This document shows, piece after piece, positions 21,736-28,473 of a stretch of DNA of 64,000 nucleotides. The stretch lies in contig RQSC01000033.1 of NCBI GenBank assembly GCA_013416795.1, forward strand, positions 154,583 through 218,582. Direction: 5' to 3'. Position 1 is the first letter of the stretch. The number at the start of each line of letters is the position of its first letter. The position numbers were made by a program, and so were the translations under genes. The DNA comes from Prasinococcaceae sp. CCMP 1430. Its lineage: Eukaryota; Plantae; Prasinodermophyta. The notes below the pieces were generated by a model. That model searched no databases and was not told the origin of the DNA. It worked only from the letters and a program-made list of their open reading frames with translations.

Positions 21736-22226
21736 ATGATGGATCAGGGGATGATATGTTACTCAAACAACCGCCATGGTTTAGGCGCGTCCCCCTCTAC
21801 ACTCACGTCTCCCACTTCAAATCATGCGCGCAAGTCGGTGAAAACCCAGCTCAGTACCTGGATGGCGCCCTGGTGGGGGTGACGGGCTCGAAGGGCGCCT
21901 TGGTGGGGCTGACGGGCTCGAAGGGCGCCTTGGTGGGGACCGGCACGGGGCGCACGGGCGCCTCGGTGACAGCGCGCCGTACTTCCTGTCGTAAAAGCTG
22001 GATCAGGGGATGCAATGTTACACAAAGAACCGCCATGGTTTAGGCGCGTCCCCCTCTACACTCACGTCTCCCACTTCAAATCATGCGCGCAAGTCGGTGA
22101 AAACCCAGCTCAGTACCTGGATGGCGCCCTGGTGGGGGTGACGGGCTCGAAGGGCGCCTTGGTGGGGCTGACGGGCTCGAAGGGCGCCTTGGTGGGGACC
22201 GGCACGGGGCGCACGGGCGCCTCGGT
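21709..22226 (+). repeat. 259-bp direct tandem duplication (21709-21967 / 21968-22226)
   Basis: Both copies start GACAGCGCGCCGTACTTCC. They differ by a few substitutions in the first ~70 nt and otherwise appear identical. Confidence 0.93.
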
Positions 22227-22532
22227 GGGGGTGACGGGCTCGAAGGGCGCCTTGGTGGGCACCGGCACGGGGCGCACGGGCGCCTCGGTGGGGGTGACGG
22301 GCTCGAAGGGCGCCTTGGTGGGCACCGGCACCGGGCGCACGGGCGCCTCGGTGGGGGTGACGGGCTCGAAGGGCGCCTTGGTGGGCACCGGCACCGGGCG
22401 CACGGGCGCCTCGGTGGGGCTGACGGGCTCGAAGGGCGCCTTGGTGGGCACGGGAACCGGCCTGTACCCGCCGCCCTTGGCGGCGGCAGTGCCGGCGAGT
22501 GCCATCATGATGGCGGCGGACAGGCGCGACAT
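22110..22532 (-). CDS. Small secreted Pro/Thr/Val-rich tandem-repeat protein (HRGP/mucin-like)
   Basis: Signal-peptide-like MSRLSAAIMMALAGTAAA followed by repeats of TEAPVRPVPVPTKAPFEPV(T/S)P. Differences between copies are mostly synonymous. Confidence 0.75.
   Translation of the reverse strand: MSRLSAAIMMALAGTAAAKGGGYRPVPVPTKAPFEPVSPTEAPVRPVPVPTKAPFEPVTPTEAPVRPVPVPTKAPFEPVTPTEAPVRPVPVPTKAPFEPVTPTEAPVRPVPVPTKAPFEPVSPTKAPFEPVTPTRAPSRY
22165..22460 (+). repeat. 63-bp coding minisatellite (~4.5 units)
   Basis: Unit GGTGGGG(G/C)TGACGGGCTCGAAGGGCGCCTTGGTGGG(G/C)ACCGGCAC(G/C)GGGCGCACGGGCGCCTC. Confidence 0.9.
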
Positions 22533-22672: not shown

Positions 22673-23044
22673 NNNNNNNNNNNNNNNNNNNNNNNNNNNN
22701 NNNNNNNNNNNNNNNNNNNNNNNNNNNNNNNNNNNNNNNNNNNNNNNNNNNNNNNNNNNNNNNNNNNNNNNNNNNNNNNNNNNNNNNNNNNNNNNNNNNN
22801 NNNNNNNNNNNNNNNNNNNNNNNNNNNNNNNNNNNNNNNNNNNNNNNNNNNNNNNNNNNNNNNNNNNNNNNNNNNNNNNNNNNNNNNNNNNNNNNNNNNN
22901 NNNNNNNNNNNNNNNNNNNNNNNNNNNNNNNNNNNNNNNNNNNNNNNNNNNNNNNNNNNNNNNNNNNNNNNNNNNNNNNNNNNNNNNNNNNNNNNNNNNN
23001 NNNNNNNNNNNNNNNNNNNNNNNNNNNNNNNNNNNNNNNNNNNN
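22673..23044. other. Assembly gap (N-run)
   Basis: 372 N. Confidence 1.
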
Positions 23045-24155
23045 GCGCCGCCGGGCCGCGCCGCGGGCGCGCGCGCGCGCGCGCATTTTTCCGGCGCACG
23101 AAAAAAGATCGGAAACCCCCGTTTGACAGCGCCGCGCGCCCGCGGCCGCCGCCAGCCACCAGCCAGGGATCGGGGGGTCCGATCGTCAACCGTTACGCCG
23201 GGGCCCTGAGTGGGCGAACTGACCTGAATTGACTACGCGGAGCGCGTGCTCGATCGCATCGATTAGCGGCAGTCGAGGAGCCAACGGCTCGAGGCGAGGA
23301 CTCCCACGCGTGGGTGTTCGGGGCGCTCATTGAACCCCGGGCGCGGATTTCCGAGCGCGCGCGTTTGACGGCCGGCGCCGGCGGCTGCGGCGGCTGCGCC
23401 CACACCACGAGCACGAAGGAGGGTGCACGCGCGGGCCACGTGCGTGCCATGCAATGCAATGCAGCGCGTGCCGGGGCGTCGTGGAAGGCTTCTGGAAGGA
23501 CGCCGTGCAGCGTTGACGCGTGCTCGGTCCTCGAGCATTGAGAGCCCCGCAGTCATCAGCGCTTGGGAGCAGCTGCCGGCTGGGGTGGGGTTACGACTTA
23601 CGAGCGCGCGCATACTATTACTAACTCGTGGTAGGGCGTGTCAGGCCGGCACGCGCGCTCGCACAGCAAAGGGCCACACCCTGCAGGCACCAATTCAGGT
23701 GGCCTGGGCGCGCCTCGTCGAATGTTGTCGTCACCCAGCCGGTCCCCGCCACAAACGTGGGGTCCTCGATCGCCCCAAGGCGCCCGGCGATGTCAAAACA
23801 GGTGCATCTCGATGCCTCGCGGCCATTACAGTCGCCGACGTGCATGTTTGCCGGGGGTTGTTTGCACGCGAGGGCCGCGCTGATCAGAGGCAGTTCGACT
23901 GCGTCAAAGAAACCGCTGTCGTGTGATGGACCGCGGCGTCGTCAACATGTTTTCGTCCGTTACCAGCAACATGATTGACCGCACGACAGCACGTCGTCGG
24001 CGGGCGGCAGGTGGTGAGAGGTACCAAGTCAAGGCCAGGCCAACGCGCCGGCTCGCTCTTGGGCGAGCACGCCGTCGCATCGCTTCGTCTCAGTCCACTA
24101 GAGATTCTGTATATTATAGCGAGATGGGATCCTTGCGCGCACAGAAAAGCTCGGC

Positions 24156-25499
24156 TCAGACGGAATAGTCCAGCAGCGAGAGCTCCCCGCTGCGCGCCTC
24201 CCCCCCCTTGGCGGGGGCGGGCAGCTTGGCGAGCGCCTCGGCGGCGATCGCGTCGCCGTACGCCGCGAGGCGGTGCAGGCTGAACACGACGTAGTCCTGG
24301 TCGGCGCGCCAGCGCGAGTCCGCCGAGTACAGGCGCATGTACGTGTAGTGGCGCAGCTCCCCCAGGACGGCCTCCTCCTCCGCAAGCTGGCCCTCGCACC
24401 AGCCGTGCTTGCCCTCGGTGAGCTGGGCCGGAAAGGCCATCGGCTCGAGCTTGTCGTGCGAGAAGGGGAGGATGTCTGGCGTGGCGCCCGTCGCGTGCGC
24501 GGTCTTGCGGGCGGCGACGCTCGCCGGGCCCTCGGACAGGTCGGGCTCCTGCAGCAGCGCGGCCGCCGCGATGAGGCGCTGCTCGAGCCAGTTGAAGGTC
24601 GTCCCTGCGAGCTCCGGCACCACCATGCCGATGCCTCGCGCCTTGAGCCAGTGCTCGCACTTCTTGGCCCAGCCGTCGGCGTCCTCGGTGAGCCGTTCGG
24701 CGCAGCCCCTGCACACCAGCGCGTTGACCGCGCCGGCGGTGGTCTCGCTCTCCACGAAGTACTGCTTGACGTCCAAGCCGCTGGCCGACTCGGCGTCGAA
24801 GATGTCGTTCATGAGTTGCAGCGCCTGCGCGCGAGGCGACGCGGGAGGCGCGGGAGCGGGTGCGCGAGTCAGCGGCGGAGACAGAGCGCCCGTCGCGAGC
24901 GCTCGCTCGCGCGCGCTCGCAGCCGAACGCACCGGCGGCTGGACGCTGGCGCTCCACTCCACCCAGAATCCCCCCAGCACGTGTTTGCCCGCTGCGGGCG
25001 TCGCGCCGCCGGCGTCGCCCTTGAGCAAAATCGCGCAGCACGCGCACGCGCCGCGCACGTGCGCCGCGGACGGCGTCGCCACCGTGACGTCGCGAAAGGT
25101 CTGGTCGATCCCTCCCAGGCGGGCGGCCTCGTCCGCGCCGGCGCTCCCGGGATCGTTCGCGCCCGCAGCGCCATCCCCGCCCGCGGCCGCGGCCGCGCCG
25201 CCCGCCTGCTTGCCGCGGGCAGCAGGCGTCGCTTGCTTGCCGACCGTTCCGCCCCCCCTCGACGCCGCGAGCCGCTTGCACAGCAGCTTGTGCTTCTTCC
25301 ACGCGCCCCGCTGGCACTCCTTGGAGCAATAGGAGACGTGCCGGCACGCCGAGCACTCGCGCAGCTGCCGGCTCCGCACGCCGCAGTGCGCGCACGCGGC
25401 CTCGCCGGCGGTCGCCCTCTCCCGACCGCGCTCCGCCCGCCTGGCGGCCGCGCGGCGGCTGGCCTGCCCGGGTTGCGCCGCGCGCCTCTTCGGGTCCAC
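24156..25499 (-). CDS. MYND zinc-finger protein with C-terminal Helitron-like Cys/LEQRLIA/EPMAFP region; probable intron 24825-24932
   Basis: MYND: CAHC...CSACRHVSYCSKECQRGAWKKHKLLC. The 108-bp in-frame segment has a GTGCGT donor, a CTGAC branch site and a CAG acceptor. No ATG start identified. Confidence 0.8.
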   Translation of the reverse strand: MDPKRRAAQPGQASRRAAARRAERGRERATAGEAACAHCGVRSRQLRECSACRHVSYCSKECQRGAWKKHKLLCKRLAASRGGGTVGKQATPAARGKQAGGAAAAAGGDGAAGANDPGSAGADEAARLGGIDQTFRDVTVATPSAAHVRGACACCAILLKGDAGGATPAAGKHVLGGFWVEWSASVQPPVRSAASARERALATGALSPPLTRAPAPAPPASPRAQALQLMNDIFDAESASGLDVKQYFVESETTAGAVNALVCRGCAERLTEDADGWAKKCEHWLKARGIGMVVPELAGTTFNWLEQRLIAAAALLQEPDLSEGPASVAARKTAHATGATPDILPFSHDKLEPMAFPAQLTEGKHGWCEGQLAEEEAVLGELRHYTYMRLYSADSRWRADQDYVVFSLHRLAAYGDAIAAEALAKLPAPAKGGEARSGELSLLDYSV

Positions 25500-25786
25500 A
25501 CAGTAAGTAGGGTCTACACATCAAAGATATACCCTAATAGTCTGTAGAATAAACCCAAATACCCGAACCGCAACATGAACACACCCTTCGTTTCGTAACC
25601 GTCGGCCCCATGAACAGGCACACATCCCTCCTCTGACTTCTGACCATATCGTACACACGCGCAGAGGGCCCGCGCTCGGCGCGACACTTGGCGCGCCATC
25701 CGCCGGCGTCGGCGGCGCCGCACATCATCCTCCCGCCGACACCGACGGGGGCCGAGGGGGGCGCGGGCGGCGCCGCCGGCGGGCGC

Positions 25787-25813
25787 GTGTGTGTGCTTGT
25801 GCGTGCGTGCGCG

Positions 25814-25853
<40 letters not shown>

Positions 25854-25897
25854 GCGTGCGTGTGTGTGTGCGTTTTTGTGTGTGTGTGTGTGTGTGA

Positions 25898-25953
<56 letters not shown>
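25787..25953 (+). repeat. (GT)n microsatellite, probably intronic
   Basis: Directly visible; followed by a CGGCAG acceptor at ~25968. Confidence 0.95.
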
Positions 25954-25954
<1 letters not shown>

Positions 25955-25968
25955 CCGCGCTCGGCAGG

Positions 25969-27000
25969 CCGGACGAAGCGGCGTCCGAGGCGGTGCGCGC
26001 CGTGGCGCTCGACCCGGGCTACGGGCGGGCGCGCGACAGGCTGGCGTCGCTCGCCGCCAAGTGTGGGCACCTCGGCGCGCTGATCGCCGCCGCCGAGCAC
26101 GCCGCCCGCAAGTACTCGGACAGCACGTCGGCGGGGCCGCTGCTGCGCTCGCTGCGGCTGCTCGCGCAAGGCCGCTCGGAGGGCAACGCGCGCTTCGGCC
26201 GGGGGAACTACAGGGCGGCGATCGAGGCGTACACGTGGGGCCTCGAGCAGGCCGAGGCAGCGGCGCGCGAGGACGTCGACCGCAACGCCGACTCGCCGGG
26301 CGCGCTGCCCGGCGCGGCGCTGCTTTGGAGCAACCGCGCGGCGTGCCGCGCCAAGGAGGGGGACCACGAGGGCGCTGTCGCCGACGCGCGACGCGCGCTC
26401 AGGGCGGCGCCAGAGTACCACAAGGCGCGCCTCAGGCTCGCGGCGGCACTGGCCGAGCTCGGCGAGCACGCAGAGGCCGCAGAGGAGTACTCGTCGCTGC
26501 GCAGCGAGCTGCCGGGGGACGTGCCGGTCGCGCTGGGCCTGTACCGGTCGAAGAGGGAGCTCGCGCGGAGGTCGGGCGGAGGGGAGGAGGTGCACTACGC
26601 AGGCCCGCCGCGGCTGGCCCGCGCGAGCAGCGTTGCGCAGTATCGCGAGAGCACGCACGACAGCGCCGCGTACCGCCGCGGCGTGTCCCTGCTGCTCTTC
26701 ACGCACGCGCACTGCCTGCCCGCCGCGCGGCTCACGCCGGTGCTGGAGAAGCTGTCGGTGCGCTTCCCGGAGGTGCTCTTCCTGGTGGTCGACCGAGACG
26801 GGGACGCCGAGATGGAGCGGCTGGTCGAGGACGACCTCGGCGTGGACGAGTACCCCACCGTGCGCCTCTTCGACGGCGGGCGGCCGCGCGGCGAGCTCGT
26901 GCACCCGTCGCCGAACGAGCTTCGCGCGACGCTCGCAGAGGCGGTGCGGCGCGCAGAGGAGGAGCAGCGCGAGGCGGCGGAGGCCATACCACGAGTGTGA
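25969..27000 (+). CDS. TPR + C-terminal thioredoxin-like protein (TTL-like); 5' exon unresolved
   Basis: TPRs: SEGNARFGRGNYRAAIEAYTWGL and LWSNRAAC...AVADARRAL...YHKARLR. Trx-like: LEKLSVRFPEVLFLVVD...YPTVRLFDGG, without a CxxC. Confidence 0.8.
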   Translation, partial: PDEAASEAVRAVALDPGYGRARDRLASLAAKCGHLGALIAAAEHAARKYSDSTSAGPLLRSLRLLAQGRSEGNARFGRGNYRAAIEAYTWGLEQAEAAAREDVDRNADSPGALPGAALLWSNRAACRAKEGDHEGAVADARRALRAAPEYHKARLRLAAALAELGEHAEAAEEYSSLRSELPGDVPVALGLYRSKRELARRSGGGEEVHYAGPPRLARASSVAQYRESTHDSAAYRRGVSLLLFTHAHCLPAARLTPVLEKLSVRFPEVLFLVVDRDGDAEMERLVEDDLGVDEYPTVRLFDGGRPRGELVHPSPNELRATLAEAVRRAEEEQREAAEAIPRV

Positions 27001-27067
27001 TTTTACTTTCGACACCTGCACATGCACTTGTTGTGCGTGCTTGCGAGCGCGCTCGAAGGCGCGTCTA

Positions 27068-28473
27068 CTAGAGCTCGCCCATCGCTTGGTCCATGGCGTC
27101 CGCGAGGAAGTCCGCGTCGGCCATGGTCATGCACATGGGCGGCTTGATGCGGAAGACGCTCCCGTTCATCCCGCCCTTGCCAATGAGCACCCCCAGCTCC
27201 TTCATGCGCTCGAAGACCTGCGCCGTCTCCGCTGGGGCGTGCTCCTTGGTCGCGCGGTCCTTGACGAGCTCCATGCCGAGCATGAGGCCGTCGCCGCGCA
27301 CGATGCCGATGACGTCGTGCTTGTCTTGCAGCTCGGTCAGGCGGCGCTTCAGGTACGCGCCGACGATGGCGGCGTTCTCCTGAAGGCCGTCCTCGTCGAT
27401 GGTCCGGAGCACCGCGCGCCCCACGGCGCTCACCACGGGGTTGCCGCCGTAGGTGTTGAAGTGCTGCGCCCGCGTGAGCGTCTGCGCGATCTCGGGGGTG
27501 GTGACGACCGCCGCGAGCGGGAAGCCGTTGCCGATGCCCTTGGCCATGGTGACGATGTCGGGCATGACGCCCGCGCGCTCGAAGCCCCAGAAGTGCGAGC
27601 CCATGCGGCCGAAGCCCGTCTGCACCTCGTCAGCGATGCACACGCCGCCGTGCTCGCGCGCCAGGGCGTGCGCCTCCGGCAGGAAGCCGTCGGCGAAGTC
27701 GACCGTCCCGCCGTAGCCCTGCACGCTCTCCGCGAAGAAGCCCGCGATCTGGCCGCACGTCGAGGCCTGGATGGACTCGCGGAACTCCCTGACGTAGGCC
27801 GACGCGTCGTTGCCGAACGCGCCGCGGTACGGATCGGGGTTCATCGTCTGGTGGACGCCGTTGCCGGCAATCGAGCCGCCTGGCATGTTGTACTTCCAGG
27901 TGTGCATGGCCGTCAGCGAGTTGGTGGCCGGAGACGCGCCGTGGTAGCTGTTGCGCAGCGAGAAGAGCGCCTGGTTGCCCGTGTAGAGGCGCGCCATCGT
28001 CATCGCCATGTCGTTGGCCTCGCTGCCCGAGTTGACGAAGTACACCACCTTGAGGTTGCCGGGCATGCGGGCGGCGAGCTCCTTGGCGTACATCGCCGTC
28101 TGCTCGCCGAGGTAGATGTTGGTCGTGTGCTGCAGGCGGCTCATCTGGTTGTAGGCCGCGCGCAGGATCGAGGGGTGCGAGTGGCCCACCGACACCGTCA
28201 CGATGCCGCCGAAGGCGTCCAGGTAGCGGCGCCCCTTCTCGTCGTACAGGTACTGCATGTGGCCGTCCGTGATCATCACGGGCTGCTTGTAGAAGTGGTT
28301 GAGGGCGGGCGACATGTGCATCTTGCGCGCCTGCCACACCTCCTCCTTGGAGGGGCCGGTGTACGGCGGCGGCGTGTAGTCGCACGGGGGCAGCTCGGGG
28401 GGCTGCACGTAGTCGAAGTCATCGAGCGCGGGCACGGCGGCCGCCGACGCGGCCGCCGACGCTTGCGCGCGCG
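27068..28473 (-). CDS. AGT2: Alanine:glyoxylate aminotransferase 2 (class III PLP aminotransferase); 5' end cut at N 28474
   Basis: QYLYDEKGRRYLDAFGGIVTVSVGH, FVNSGSEANDMA, ADEVQTGFGR, TMAKGIGNG (PLP Lys), VFRIKPPMC. Confidence 0.95.

Follow-up and report, generated by a model that had tools for sequence, protein, structure and literature searches.

A 64,000-nucleotide stretch of the Prasinococcaceae sp. CCMP 1430 genome assembly (contig RQSC01000033.1, positions 154,583 to 218,582; referred to here as the window) contains on its minus strand the gene PRCOL_00001504, which encodes a MYND zinc finger followed by a domain that resembles the N-terminus of Helitron-like transposases. Our data suggest that this is a host gene joining MYND to an exapted Helitron-like transposase N-terminus, without the Rep nuclease and the helicase, and we place the probability of this reading at about 0.7. 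A first-pass annotation of the window, made from the letters of the DNA alone, had described a chimeric host gene with a co-opted Helitron module. We found support for the module and for its presence in a host gene, while the gene proved to be an older family member and not specific to one lineage.

Domain architecture and conserved motifs

The product consists of an N-terminal MYND finger, a low-complexity linker and a compact alpha/beta domain of approximately 260 residues. The MYND finger reported in the first-pass annotation is indeed present, since Pfam zf-MYND (PF01753) matches amino acids 36-74 (25278-25394, minus strand) along its full profile (positions 1-39 of 39) with an E-value of 1.8e-10 and 41.1 bits against a cutoff of 22.7. 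All motifs quoted there were also found within a few bases of where they had been placed: CACCAIL at 25026-25046, VCRGCAERL at 24690-24716, GMVVPELAGTTFNWLEQRLIA at 24567-24629, ILPFSHDKLEPMAFPAQLTEGKHGW at 24399-24473 and LRHYTYMRLYSADSRWRADQDYVVF at 24282-24356. At the level of sequence these motifs exceed chance, as they form the most conserved columns of a 33-sequence alignment of the family described below. Residues R308, P319, E352, F356, R389 and R398 are invariant in this alignment, and both cysteine pairs are retained, with C152 kept in 25 of 25 and C155 in 23 of 23 members that cover the column, and C263 and C266 kept in 31 of 32 and 32 of 33 members, respectively.

An AlphaFold prediction from the single sequence was unusable (predicted local distance difference test, pLDDT, of 38), and the family alignment was used instead. 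The resulting AlphaFold2 (AF2) model is confident (pLDDT 82; predicted template modeling score, pTM, 0.82), and its low-confidence parts are the loop encoded by the intron described below and the surroundings of that loop. The first CxxC (C152/C155 of CACCAIL, 25035-25046) sits between two strands of the model, while the second (C263/C266 of VCRGCAERL, 24702-24713) falls at the start of a long helix (model strand 130-135, then helix 136-157, pLDDT approximately 90). Given this conservation and the model, the C-terminal domain probably binds one zinc through C152/C155 and C263/C266, each pair forming half of a predicted C4 site.

Two further blocks on the minus strand define the domain. One resembles the core of DUF6570 (24510-24629) and comprises a VVPEL..(N)WLEQRLIA helix followed by PDLSxGPxSxA(G/A); it is marked by hhalign, by BLASTP and by the invariant R308 and P319. 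The other, referred to here as the pre-Rep block, spans amino acids 343-414 (24258-24473; LExxAFPxL..G.(H)GW ... HYTxMRLYSxDxRWRxDxDYVxFSLHRLAA) and is marked by hhalign and Foldseek as the counterpart of the stretch that separates DUF6570 from the Rep model in Helitron-like transposases.

Relationship to Helitron-like transposase N-termini

The C-terminal domain is very likely a true homolog of the N-terminus of Helitron-like (HLE2/Helentron-type) transposases, judging from profile and fold comparisons. We consider this homology supported because language-model embeddings, Foldseek searches of AFDB, a shape search of the ESM Atlas, a VIA-align scan of the PDB, and hidden Markov model (HMM) searches with hhalign all converge on one rare family.

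Word-indexed protein searches with the C-terminal half and then with the family alignment A2 returned nothing useful, probably because they were swamped by Ala-rich words, while a family profile without the low-complexity members (A4) made a search of 5.8 billion proteins informative. The A4 HMM recovered family members and a single other match, P0078, at 28 bits. This protein is a genuine member of DUF6570 (PF20209, E = 6.5e-17, residues 2-117). When A4 was compared with P0078 by hhalign, the AFP.LFP/YT.MRLYS block fell on P0078 residues 185-251 with a probability of 94.5, an E-value of 8e-8 and a score of 55.4. A second, collinear match placed family columns 57-85 on P0078 residues 7-34 (score 33.7, P = 2.5e-4, probability 43%), which is the DUF6570 core IPPELAHLTVMEQRLVSKVQ (the L..P.L..LN.xExR..A.I.L block), and covered approximately 28 of 133 profile positions. 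Both matches exceed every one of 100 shuffles of P0078 (mean score 13.5, standard deviation 2.7, maximum 22.4) as well as the reversed sequence (14.0). The alignment A2, whose first row is the window sequence, likewise matched P0078 over window residues 343-414 (probability 93.0, E = 3.3e-7), and the score of the pre-Rep match was 52-55 across A2 and A4. BLASTP of the window protein alone against P0078 gave a pairwise E-value of 7.7e-4 for the pre-Rep block and 0.41 for the DUF6570 block (47% identity over 19 amino acids). Although P0078 was picked by similarity, that choice has no bearing on its second block or its Pfam identity.

These two collinear matches support the motif order that had been likened to the region upstream of Rep in Helitron-like elements, that is, a zinc motif, a DUF6570 core and a pre-Rep block running into Helitron_like_N. 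In L011, a metagenomic Helitron open reading frame (ORF), AMAFPCLFPYGKDDF stands approximately 15 residues before a match to PF14214 (E = 2.2e-19, residues 83-272), with the motif AFPCLFPYG just upstream of the Rep model, and the window protein ends approximately 30 residues past the point where PF14214 begins in L011. A nine-sequence motif alignment was too divergent for a pattern search, and no relatives of P0078 were found in metagenome contigs. The Rep nuclease, with its HUH motif and catalytic tyrosines, has no Pfam match in the window protein.

Comparisons of fold and embedding lead to the same group of proteins. The language-model neighbors of residues 225-447 are DUF6570 clusters (score 0.92), with Helitron_like_N clusters lower down, and the neighbors of P0006, a family member of 38% identity, are likewise DUF6570 clusters. 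When the AF2 model was compared with 2.3 million AFDB clusters by Foldseek, 10 of the top 30 matches were named Helitron helicase-like, DUF6570 or Helitron_like_N, and 6 more were named "ATP-dependent DNA helicase", "helicase-like" or "replicase helicase endonuclease". The strongest local alignments all lie on model residues 204-296 (protein 332-424), at a root-mean-square deviation of 4-6 Å, 23-33% identity and probabilities of 0.66-0.92. In the ESM Atlas shape search, a DUF6570 cluster heads the list, with a template modeling (TM) score of approximately 0.3. Foldseek found nothing significant in the PDB, and a VIA-align scan of 48,161 PDB chains, which is independent of Foldseek, ranked 7lcc_A first with a Z of 3.7. 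This chain is the only Helitron transposase structure there, and it is also the sole chain with Z >= 2 among the PDB candidates of Foldseek. Since nothing among the 48,161 chains scored above Z 3.7, the fold of the domain is not represented in the PDB.

The resemblance could instead be due to chance or convergence, in which case the C-terminal domain would be a lineage-restricted zinc-binding domain unrelated to Helitrons, with EQRLI and AFP.LFP.G as coincidental likenesses. Several results argue in this direction or otherwise speak against the exaptation of a transposase domain. The first-pass annotation had pointed to PF20209 (DUF6570) and PF14214 (Helitron_like_N), and this assignment failed by HMMER: both models are absent from a Pfam scan of the window protein even at E <= 10, MYND being the only significant model, and just one of the 33 family members touches PF20209, at E 0.06-0.08 (gathering score 24.3 bits). 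The family profile has no match among PDB sequences at E <= 10, and the database-wide HMMER E-value of P0078 is only 0.34. Structural scores all lie in the twilight zone: no AFDB match is individually significant (best E 0.11; TM <= 0.3), and the VIA Z of 3.7 is weak, given that the best score for unmatched models is usually Z 7-8. Furthermore, language-model scores of approximately 0.9 arise for 4-10% of shuffled proteins. The Helitron side of the comparison comprises two sequences only (P0078 and L011), which makes it profile-to-sequence and not profile-to-profile, and L011 was fetched with the shared motif itself (in a three-sequence version) and so is not independent evidence. Approximately 150 residues separate the matched blocks in P0078 and approximately 30 in the family, leaving about 120 without a counterpart. 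At two positions that are well conserved in the family, the window protein also differs from the consensus (L359 is Q and G330 is A). At the level of the locus, conserved synteny was not found in comparison with contig L002 of a sister species (13.7 kb of a 17.7-kb contig), the gene itself being all that is common to both, and the tree of the family is star-like and uninformative on the direction of descent.

Coincidence would nevertheless have to account for five different methods converging on the same rare family, for two collinear blocks that each beat all 100 shuffles, and for the single Helitron transposase entry coming first of 48,161 PDB chains, and we regard it as improbable. Profile and structural similarity to Helitron proteins is thus present, both in hhalign scores against shuffles and in the fold and language-model searches. 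In formal terms the gene belongs to zf-MYND and, by curated thresholds, to neither PF20209 nor PF14214, and it is not a Rep nuclease, a helicase or a mobile Helitron.

Transcript and gene structure

The locus is a transcribed, spliced, polyadenylated single-copy nuclear gene. Contigs from public sequencing runs were placed on 23100-27500 for transcript and depth evidence. A culture run of the same organism yielded a 1,241-nt contig that spans 24076-24823 and 24932-25411, and the splice joint 24823/24932 is found both in the culture run X1 (side 255) and in a marine metatranscriptome, X2 (side 68). The RNA-derived contigs skip 24825-24932, a 108-nt GT..AG intron on the minus strand that is in frame. 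The junction ...VQPP/ALQLMND... occurs in the database models P0049 and P0052, in agreement with the RNA contigs. P0049 has the same sequence as the spliced product and is listed in EukProt as Prasinoderma coloniale PRCOL_00001504-RA, which assigns the window to this marine prasinodermophyte. The normal spliceosomal intron of the first-pass annotation was therefore confirmed by RNA, but it lies inside the quoted ORF: since the intron is in frame, that ORF (24156-25499, minus strand, 447 codons) runs through it, and the Ala/Pro-rich codons 190-225 of the unspliced ORF are not protein. The last coding exon (24156-24824) holds codons 226-447 and the stop codon at 24156-24158, and thereby most of the Helitron-N-terminus-like domain; it is defined by the RNA contig and by P0049 and P0052. 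The trusted part of the upstream coding exon (24933-25411), which rests on the RNA contig and P0052, holds the MYND finger, the Ala/Gly-rich linker and the first CxxC hairpin.

The sister-species gene (L002, 2757-3683) is continuous at the homologous position and has no intron there, which indicates a recent gain or loss of the 108-nt intron. A short tandem repeat of 14 nt lies inside the intron at 24884-24920.

At the 3' end, the metatranscriptome contig stops at 24093 in a loose plus-strand T-run that reads as a poly(A) tail on the coding strand; the culture RNA contig begins at 24076. The 3' untranslated region (UTR) thus occupies 24093-24155 and the poly(A) site lies 63 nt past the stop codon. 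Since the mRNA ends there, no downstream exon can supply a nuclease or a helicase.

The 5' end cannot be taken from the window as it stands. The ORF begins with GTG and has no in-frame ATG ahead of the MYND finger. The RNA contig is collinear with the window to 25411 and then carries a loose end of GCC (poly-Ala) repeats that are absent from the window, while in contig 12 of X9, another run of the same organism whose type is not on record, 138 letters replace base 25412 ("skips 1", 25411/25413). The window therefore appears to be approximately 137 nt short at 25411-25413, which shifts the frame of everything upstream, and this discrepancy explains an ORF without an ATG. The window gives no reliable frame ahead of codon 30, and the N-terminus is not readable from it. 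By frame arithmetic, inserting the 138 letters would bring the ATG at 25519-25521 into frame with the MYND finger. The transcript-derived P0052 begins with an Ala run and then GEAAC, and is collinear through the first CxxC of MYND. We rejected the annotated start of P0049 (MLRRQLREC...), which needs an intron that deletes the first MYND CxxC and conflicts with P0052. The P0049 model (25372-25574) also needs a short first exon at approximately 25567-25574. The annotated 5' end of P0049 is probably an artefact of the assembly problem at 25412.

Copy number and genomic context

Searches of the 64-kb window with the gene by tblastn and blastn returned the self match only, and the spanning contig has a depth of 27.1, equal to that of its flanks. 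Scans for inverted and tandem repeats around the gene found GC-rich low complexity, a (GT)69 microsatellite upstream and an array of 63-nt units farther downstream, and nothing like Helitron ends. The gene is therefore single copy in the window at flank-level depth and without terminal structures, in contrast to the many copies with Helitron termini that an active element would show. The Rep nuclease and the PIF1 helicase are absent from the gene and the window by Pfam and by annotation of the neighbors, and tblastn with a real Helitron_like_N ORF found no match in the window; together with a poly(A) site 63 nt past the stop, this agrees with the earlier statement that HUH Rep and PIF1 are missing.

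We also found the gene to be placed among housekeeping genes, as had been noted before. Its neighbors are UPF1, the Spb1 rRNA methyltransferase, a class-I release factor (RF-1), a glyoxalase, a TPR protein, a class-III aminotransferase, a TRIC channel, an ABC half-transporter and an M14 carboxypeptidase. The genes around four homologs include DNA primase, G-patch/GCFC, histone, cathepsin, IFT43, BT1, arginase, kinesin and TTC21, with neither Rep nor PIF1 encoded within 10 kb of these four homologs.

Family distribution and selection

An exhaustive phmmer search of 1.84 billion protein representatives with residues 225-447 returned 48 representatives at E <= 1e-3, 26 of them at E <= 1e-10. The closest match, at 54% identity, is P0002 with its relatives P0056-P0058, which come from metagenome contigs of 71% GC and whose source is evidently the sister species. 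The other matches are mostly proteins of approximately 300 residues. Pfam MYND is present in 18 of the 33 aligned members (alignment A1), many of the remaining ones being N-terminally truncated contigs. All members have the same order of motifs: FRxV; an invariant CxxC in a Cys-rich hairpin; PA; ACLxCA; CxxWL; ExR..A...L...PDLSxG..SxAG; VxF....LE..AFPxL....GW; HYTxMRLYSxDxRWRxDxDYVxFSLHRLAAxG; and LP...P. Members with a named source are the "MYND-type domain-containing protein" of Grammatophora oceanica, a diatom, and CAH0378737.1 of Pelagomonas calceolata, a pelagophyte; further members come from uncultured marine eukaryotes. The same architecture therefore recurs in other algae, as the first-pass annotation had thought worth looking for, in the sister species, in Grammatophora and in Pelagomonas. 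The gene is not a lineage-specific chimera and belongs to an older family that it shares with diatoms and pelagophytes. A search for related loci in bacterial and archaeal genomes was empty. In the family-only tree, the two Prasinoderma-type sequences form an isolated pair, and the tree is uninformative on horizontal transfer between green and stramenopile algae.

Two family proteins, P0032 (657 amino acids) and P0036 (785 amino acids), carry the family C-terminal block amid unrelated sequence, in a segment near-identical to P0015. They probably represent chimeric predictions from metagenome contigs, or else a branch of the family that lacks MYND. Another MYND gene, this one joined to TPR repeats, lies approximately 8 kb upstream of the Pelagomonas member (L008, 1202-2431 and 10001-11074, CAKKNE010000006.1), and MYND genes may be locally clustered or expanded in Pelagomonas calceolata.

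The ratio of non-synonymous to synonymous substitution rates (dN/dS) against the sister species is 0.51 (NG86) or 0.40 (LWL85) over 221 aligned codons, with dS near saturation and GC at third codon positions (GC3) of approximately 0.9. A wild metatranscriptome variant has 6 coding differences, of which 4 are synonymous and 2 non-synonymous, and in its 3' UTR of approximately 63 nt there are 5 substitutions and 1 indel. Sister-species contigs from four samples differ at 2 synonymous and 0 non-synonymous sites. These data, though thin, point to constraint, and a stronger argument for it is that the family has been conserved in organisms as different as a prasinodermophyte, a diatom and a pelagophyte.

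Features of the locus can also be read as those of a decaying Helitron-like fragment with a captured MYND exon, which would not be a functional host gene. Its similarity spans only a fragment of a transposase, the window ORF has no start codon, synteny with the sister species is absent and a dN/dS of approximately 0.4-0.5 is not very low. Such a remnant would be hard to reconcile with a single copy that has neither terminal repeats nor hairpins, with spliced and polyadenylated RNA both in culture and in the sea, or with an open frame, invariant residues, domain order and length that are kept in a prasinodermophyte, a diatom and a pelagophyte. Furthermore, the missing ATG is explained by the discrepancy at 25412, and neither Rep nor PIF1 is near any of the five loci examined. 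We therefore hold a transposon remnant to be extremely improbable.

Direction of descent

Given homology, descent from transposon to host is likely. We favor it because the stronger block is contiguous with the Rep model, because the best PDB match is an HLE1 transposase without DUF6570, and because the cellular family is tiny and narrow while Helitron N-termini are ubiquitous. The opposite course, in which an old algal cellular module was captured by an ancestor of HLE2, or both were derived from a common ancestor that was not a transposon, would mean that the gene was not domesticated from a transposon. It would fit the observation that every family member is in a host context, as well as the HELIANO report that DUF6570 occurs only in the HLE2 clade and is listed among domains acquired by Helitron-like transposases (PMC11417382). 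The stronger block, however, is not DUF6570 proper but the segment that runs into Helitron_like_N, and the top PDB match comes from an HLE1 transposase, which lacks DUF6570. The family amounts to 48 representatives in 1.84 billion, whereas DUF6570 and Helitron proteins extend across animals, fungi, rotifers and plants, and the family version looks like a shortened transposase region. Reverse or shared ancestry is thus unlikely, if less so than coincidence, and we retain exaptation of a transposase N-terminus by a host as the preferred reading.

Proposed function

We propose that an algal ancestor exapted the N-terminus of a Helitron-like transposase and fused it to MYND, or that the fusion spread between algae. 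MYND fingers bind short peptide motifs in their partner proteins, which are frequently co-repressors, and by this analogy the MYND finger would recruit a partner protein to a site bound by the C-terminal domain. That domain would bind nucleic acid by analogy with Helraiser, which neither binds nor cleaves single-stranded DNA (ssDNA) when it is without its N-terminal 489 residues, a region with a zinc-finger-like motif (PMC4778049). The protein would thereby serve as an adaptor or regulator directed to DNA, possibly with Helitron-like sequences as its target. Roles in chromatin regulation or transposon control had been raised in the first-pass annotation and are conjectural. We give a nucleic-acid-binding adaptor role slightly less than even odds. 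As a regulator, the exapted domain might occupy transposon ends or genomic hairpins while MYND brings a silencing or chromatin partner, in the manner of the KP repressor. Specific control of Helitron-like elements by the family protein is doubtful, and it is to a similar degree doubtful that the protein is a Helitron-derived, sequence- or structure-specific binder of hairpins or ssDNA used against or in place of Helitron-like elements. Were it one, it would be the first protein-coding domestication known from the rolling-circle Helitron superfamily, common to distant marine algae and possibly spread among them by horizontal transfer.

Other features of the window

The GC content of the window is approximately 0.57-0.74 in 2-kb windows. 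A (GT)69 microsatellite at 25816-25953 lies in the divergent intergenic region before the TPR gene, and the contigs of all runs break there. This upstream neighbor (25789-26997, plus strand) has Pfam TPR repeats and a C-terminal stretch that is thioredoxin-like by eye only; it would be a TPR-thioredoxin-type protein, of which Pfam backs the TPR part. Downstream of the glyoxalase gene, tandem arrays at 21864-22460 consist of 30-nt and 63-nt units (4.9 copies, 97% identical), border an N gap at 22673-23044 and would encode Gly/Thr/Val-rich repeats in one frame.

Comparison with known systems

Among Helitron-like elements (HLEs), DUF6570 is part of the RepHel ORF and is a marker of the HLE2 clade (PMC11417382). 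The algal gene shares with HLE2/Helentron/Helitron2 RepHel N-termini a probable counterpart of the P.EL..L..EQRLI helix and, after it, the AFP.LFP.G..GW / Y..RL...D.RW...Y..F block, and its fold and embedding neighbors are overwhelmingly DUF6570 and Helitron proteins. It differs from HLE2 RepHel in falling below the Pfam gathering thresholds, in the roughly 120 residues missing between the blocks, and in having no HUH, catalytic tyrosine, PIF1, transposon ends or multiple copies in the window. It also differs in its N-terminal MYND, a domain that is not mentioned in the HELIANO text. The Helraiser transposase (7LCC) is the top structural match of the AF2 model, and its N-terminus provides the functional analogy (PMC4778049), although the match has a Z of only 3.7 and 12% identity, is scattered over chain residues 120-776 and has no counterpart at the sequence level. 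Helraiser is moreover an HLE1 element, a clade that lacks DUF6570 (PMC11417382).

Among MYND adaptors such as ZMYND11/BS69, DEAF1, ETO and SMYD, the algal protein is similar in having a canonical, full-profile MYND finger. Unlike them, it has no PWWP, bromo, SAND, TAF-homology or SET domain, and the partner domain is the Helitron-like module. Full-text literature searches found no link between MYND and Helitron proteins. They also found no protein-coding domestication from the Helitron superfamily, with only cis-regulatory co-option turning up, and the phrase "domesticated Helitron" occurred only in a Drosophila dosage-compensation paper and in a population-genomics review of transposable elements, neither of which has a title on a transposase-derived protein. 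Proteins of the family are already in databases as hypothetical or "MYND-type domain-containing" proteins. If our reading is correct, hypothetical "MYND-type" proteins of ecologically important phytoplankton (prasinodermophytes, diatoms and pelagophytes) would gain a testable function, and the domain, which is small and folds well in prediction (pTM 0.82), would offer an experimentally tractable model of the DUF6570/pre-Rep region, which is poorly understood.

The DNA-binding parts of cut-and-paste transposases have given rise to many host regulators, and THAP- or BED-derived host proteins and PIF/Harbinger-derived genes are examples of such domesticated DNA-binding domains. The algal gene is like the host-transposase fusion genes described previously (PMC9710019) in that a non-catalytic part of a transposase is combined with a host interaction domain in a conserved, single-copy, expressed gene. 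It is unlike them in that the source would be a rolling-circle Helitron-like element and in that DNA binding is here a prediction. The gene is thus of a known kind, a transposase-derived host fusion gene, and its source superfamily is new relative to the literature searched. Were the reading to hold, rolling-circle Helitron-like elements would be added as a new source superfamily of transposase domestication.

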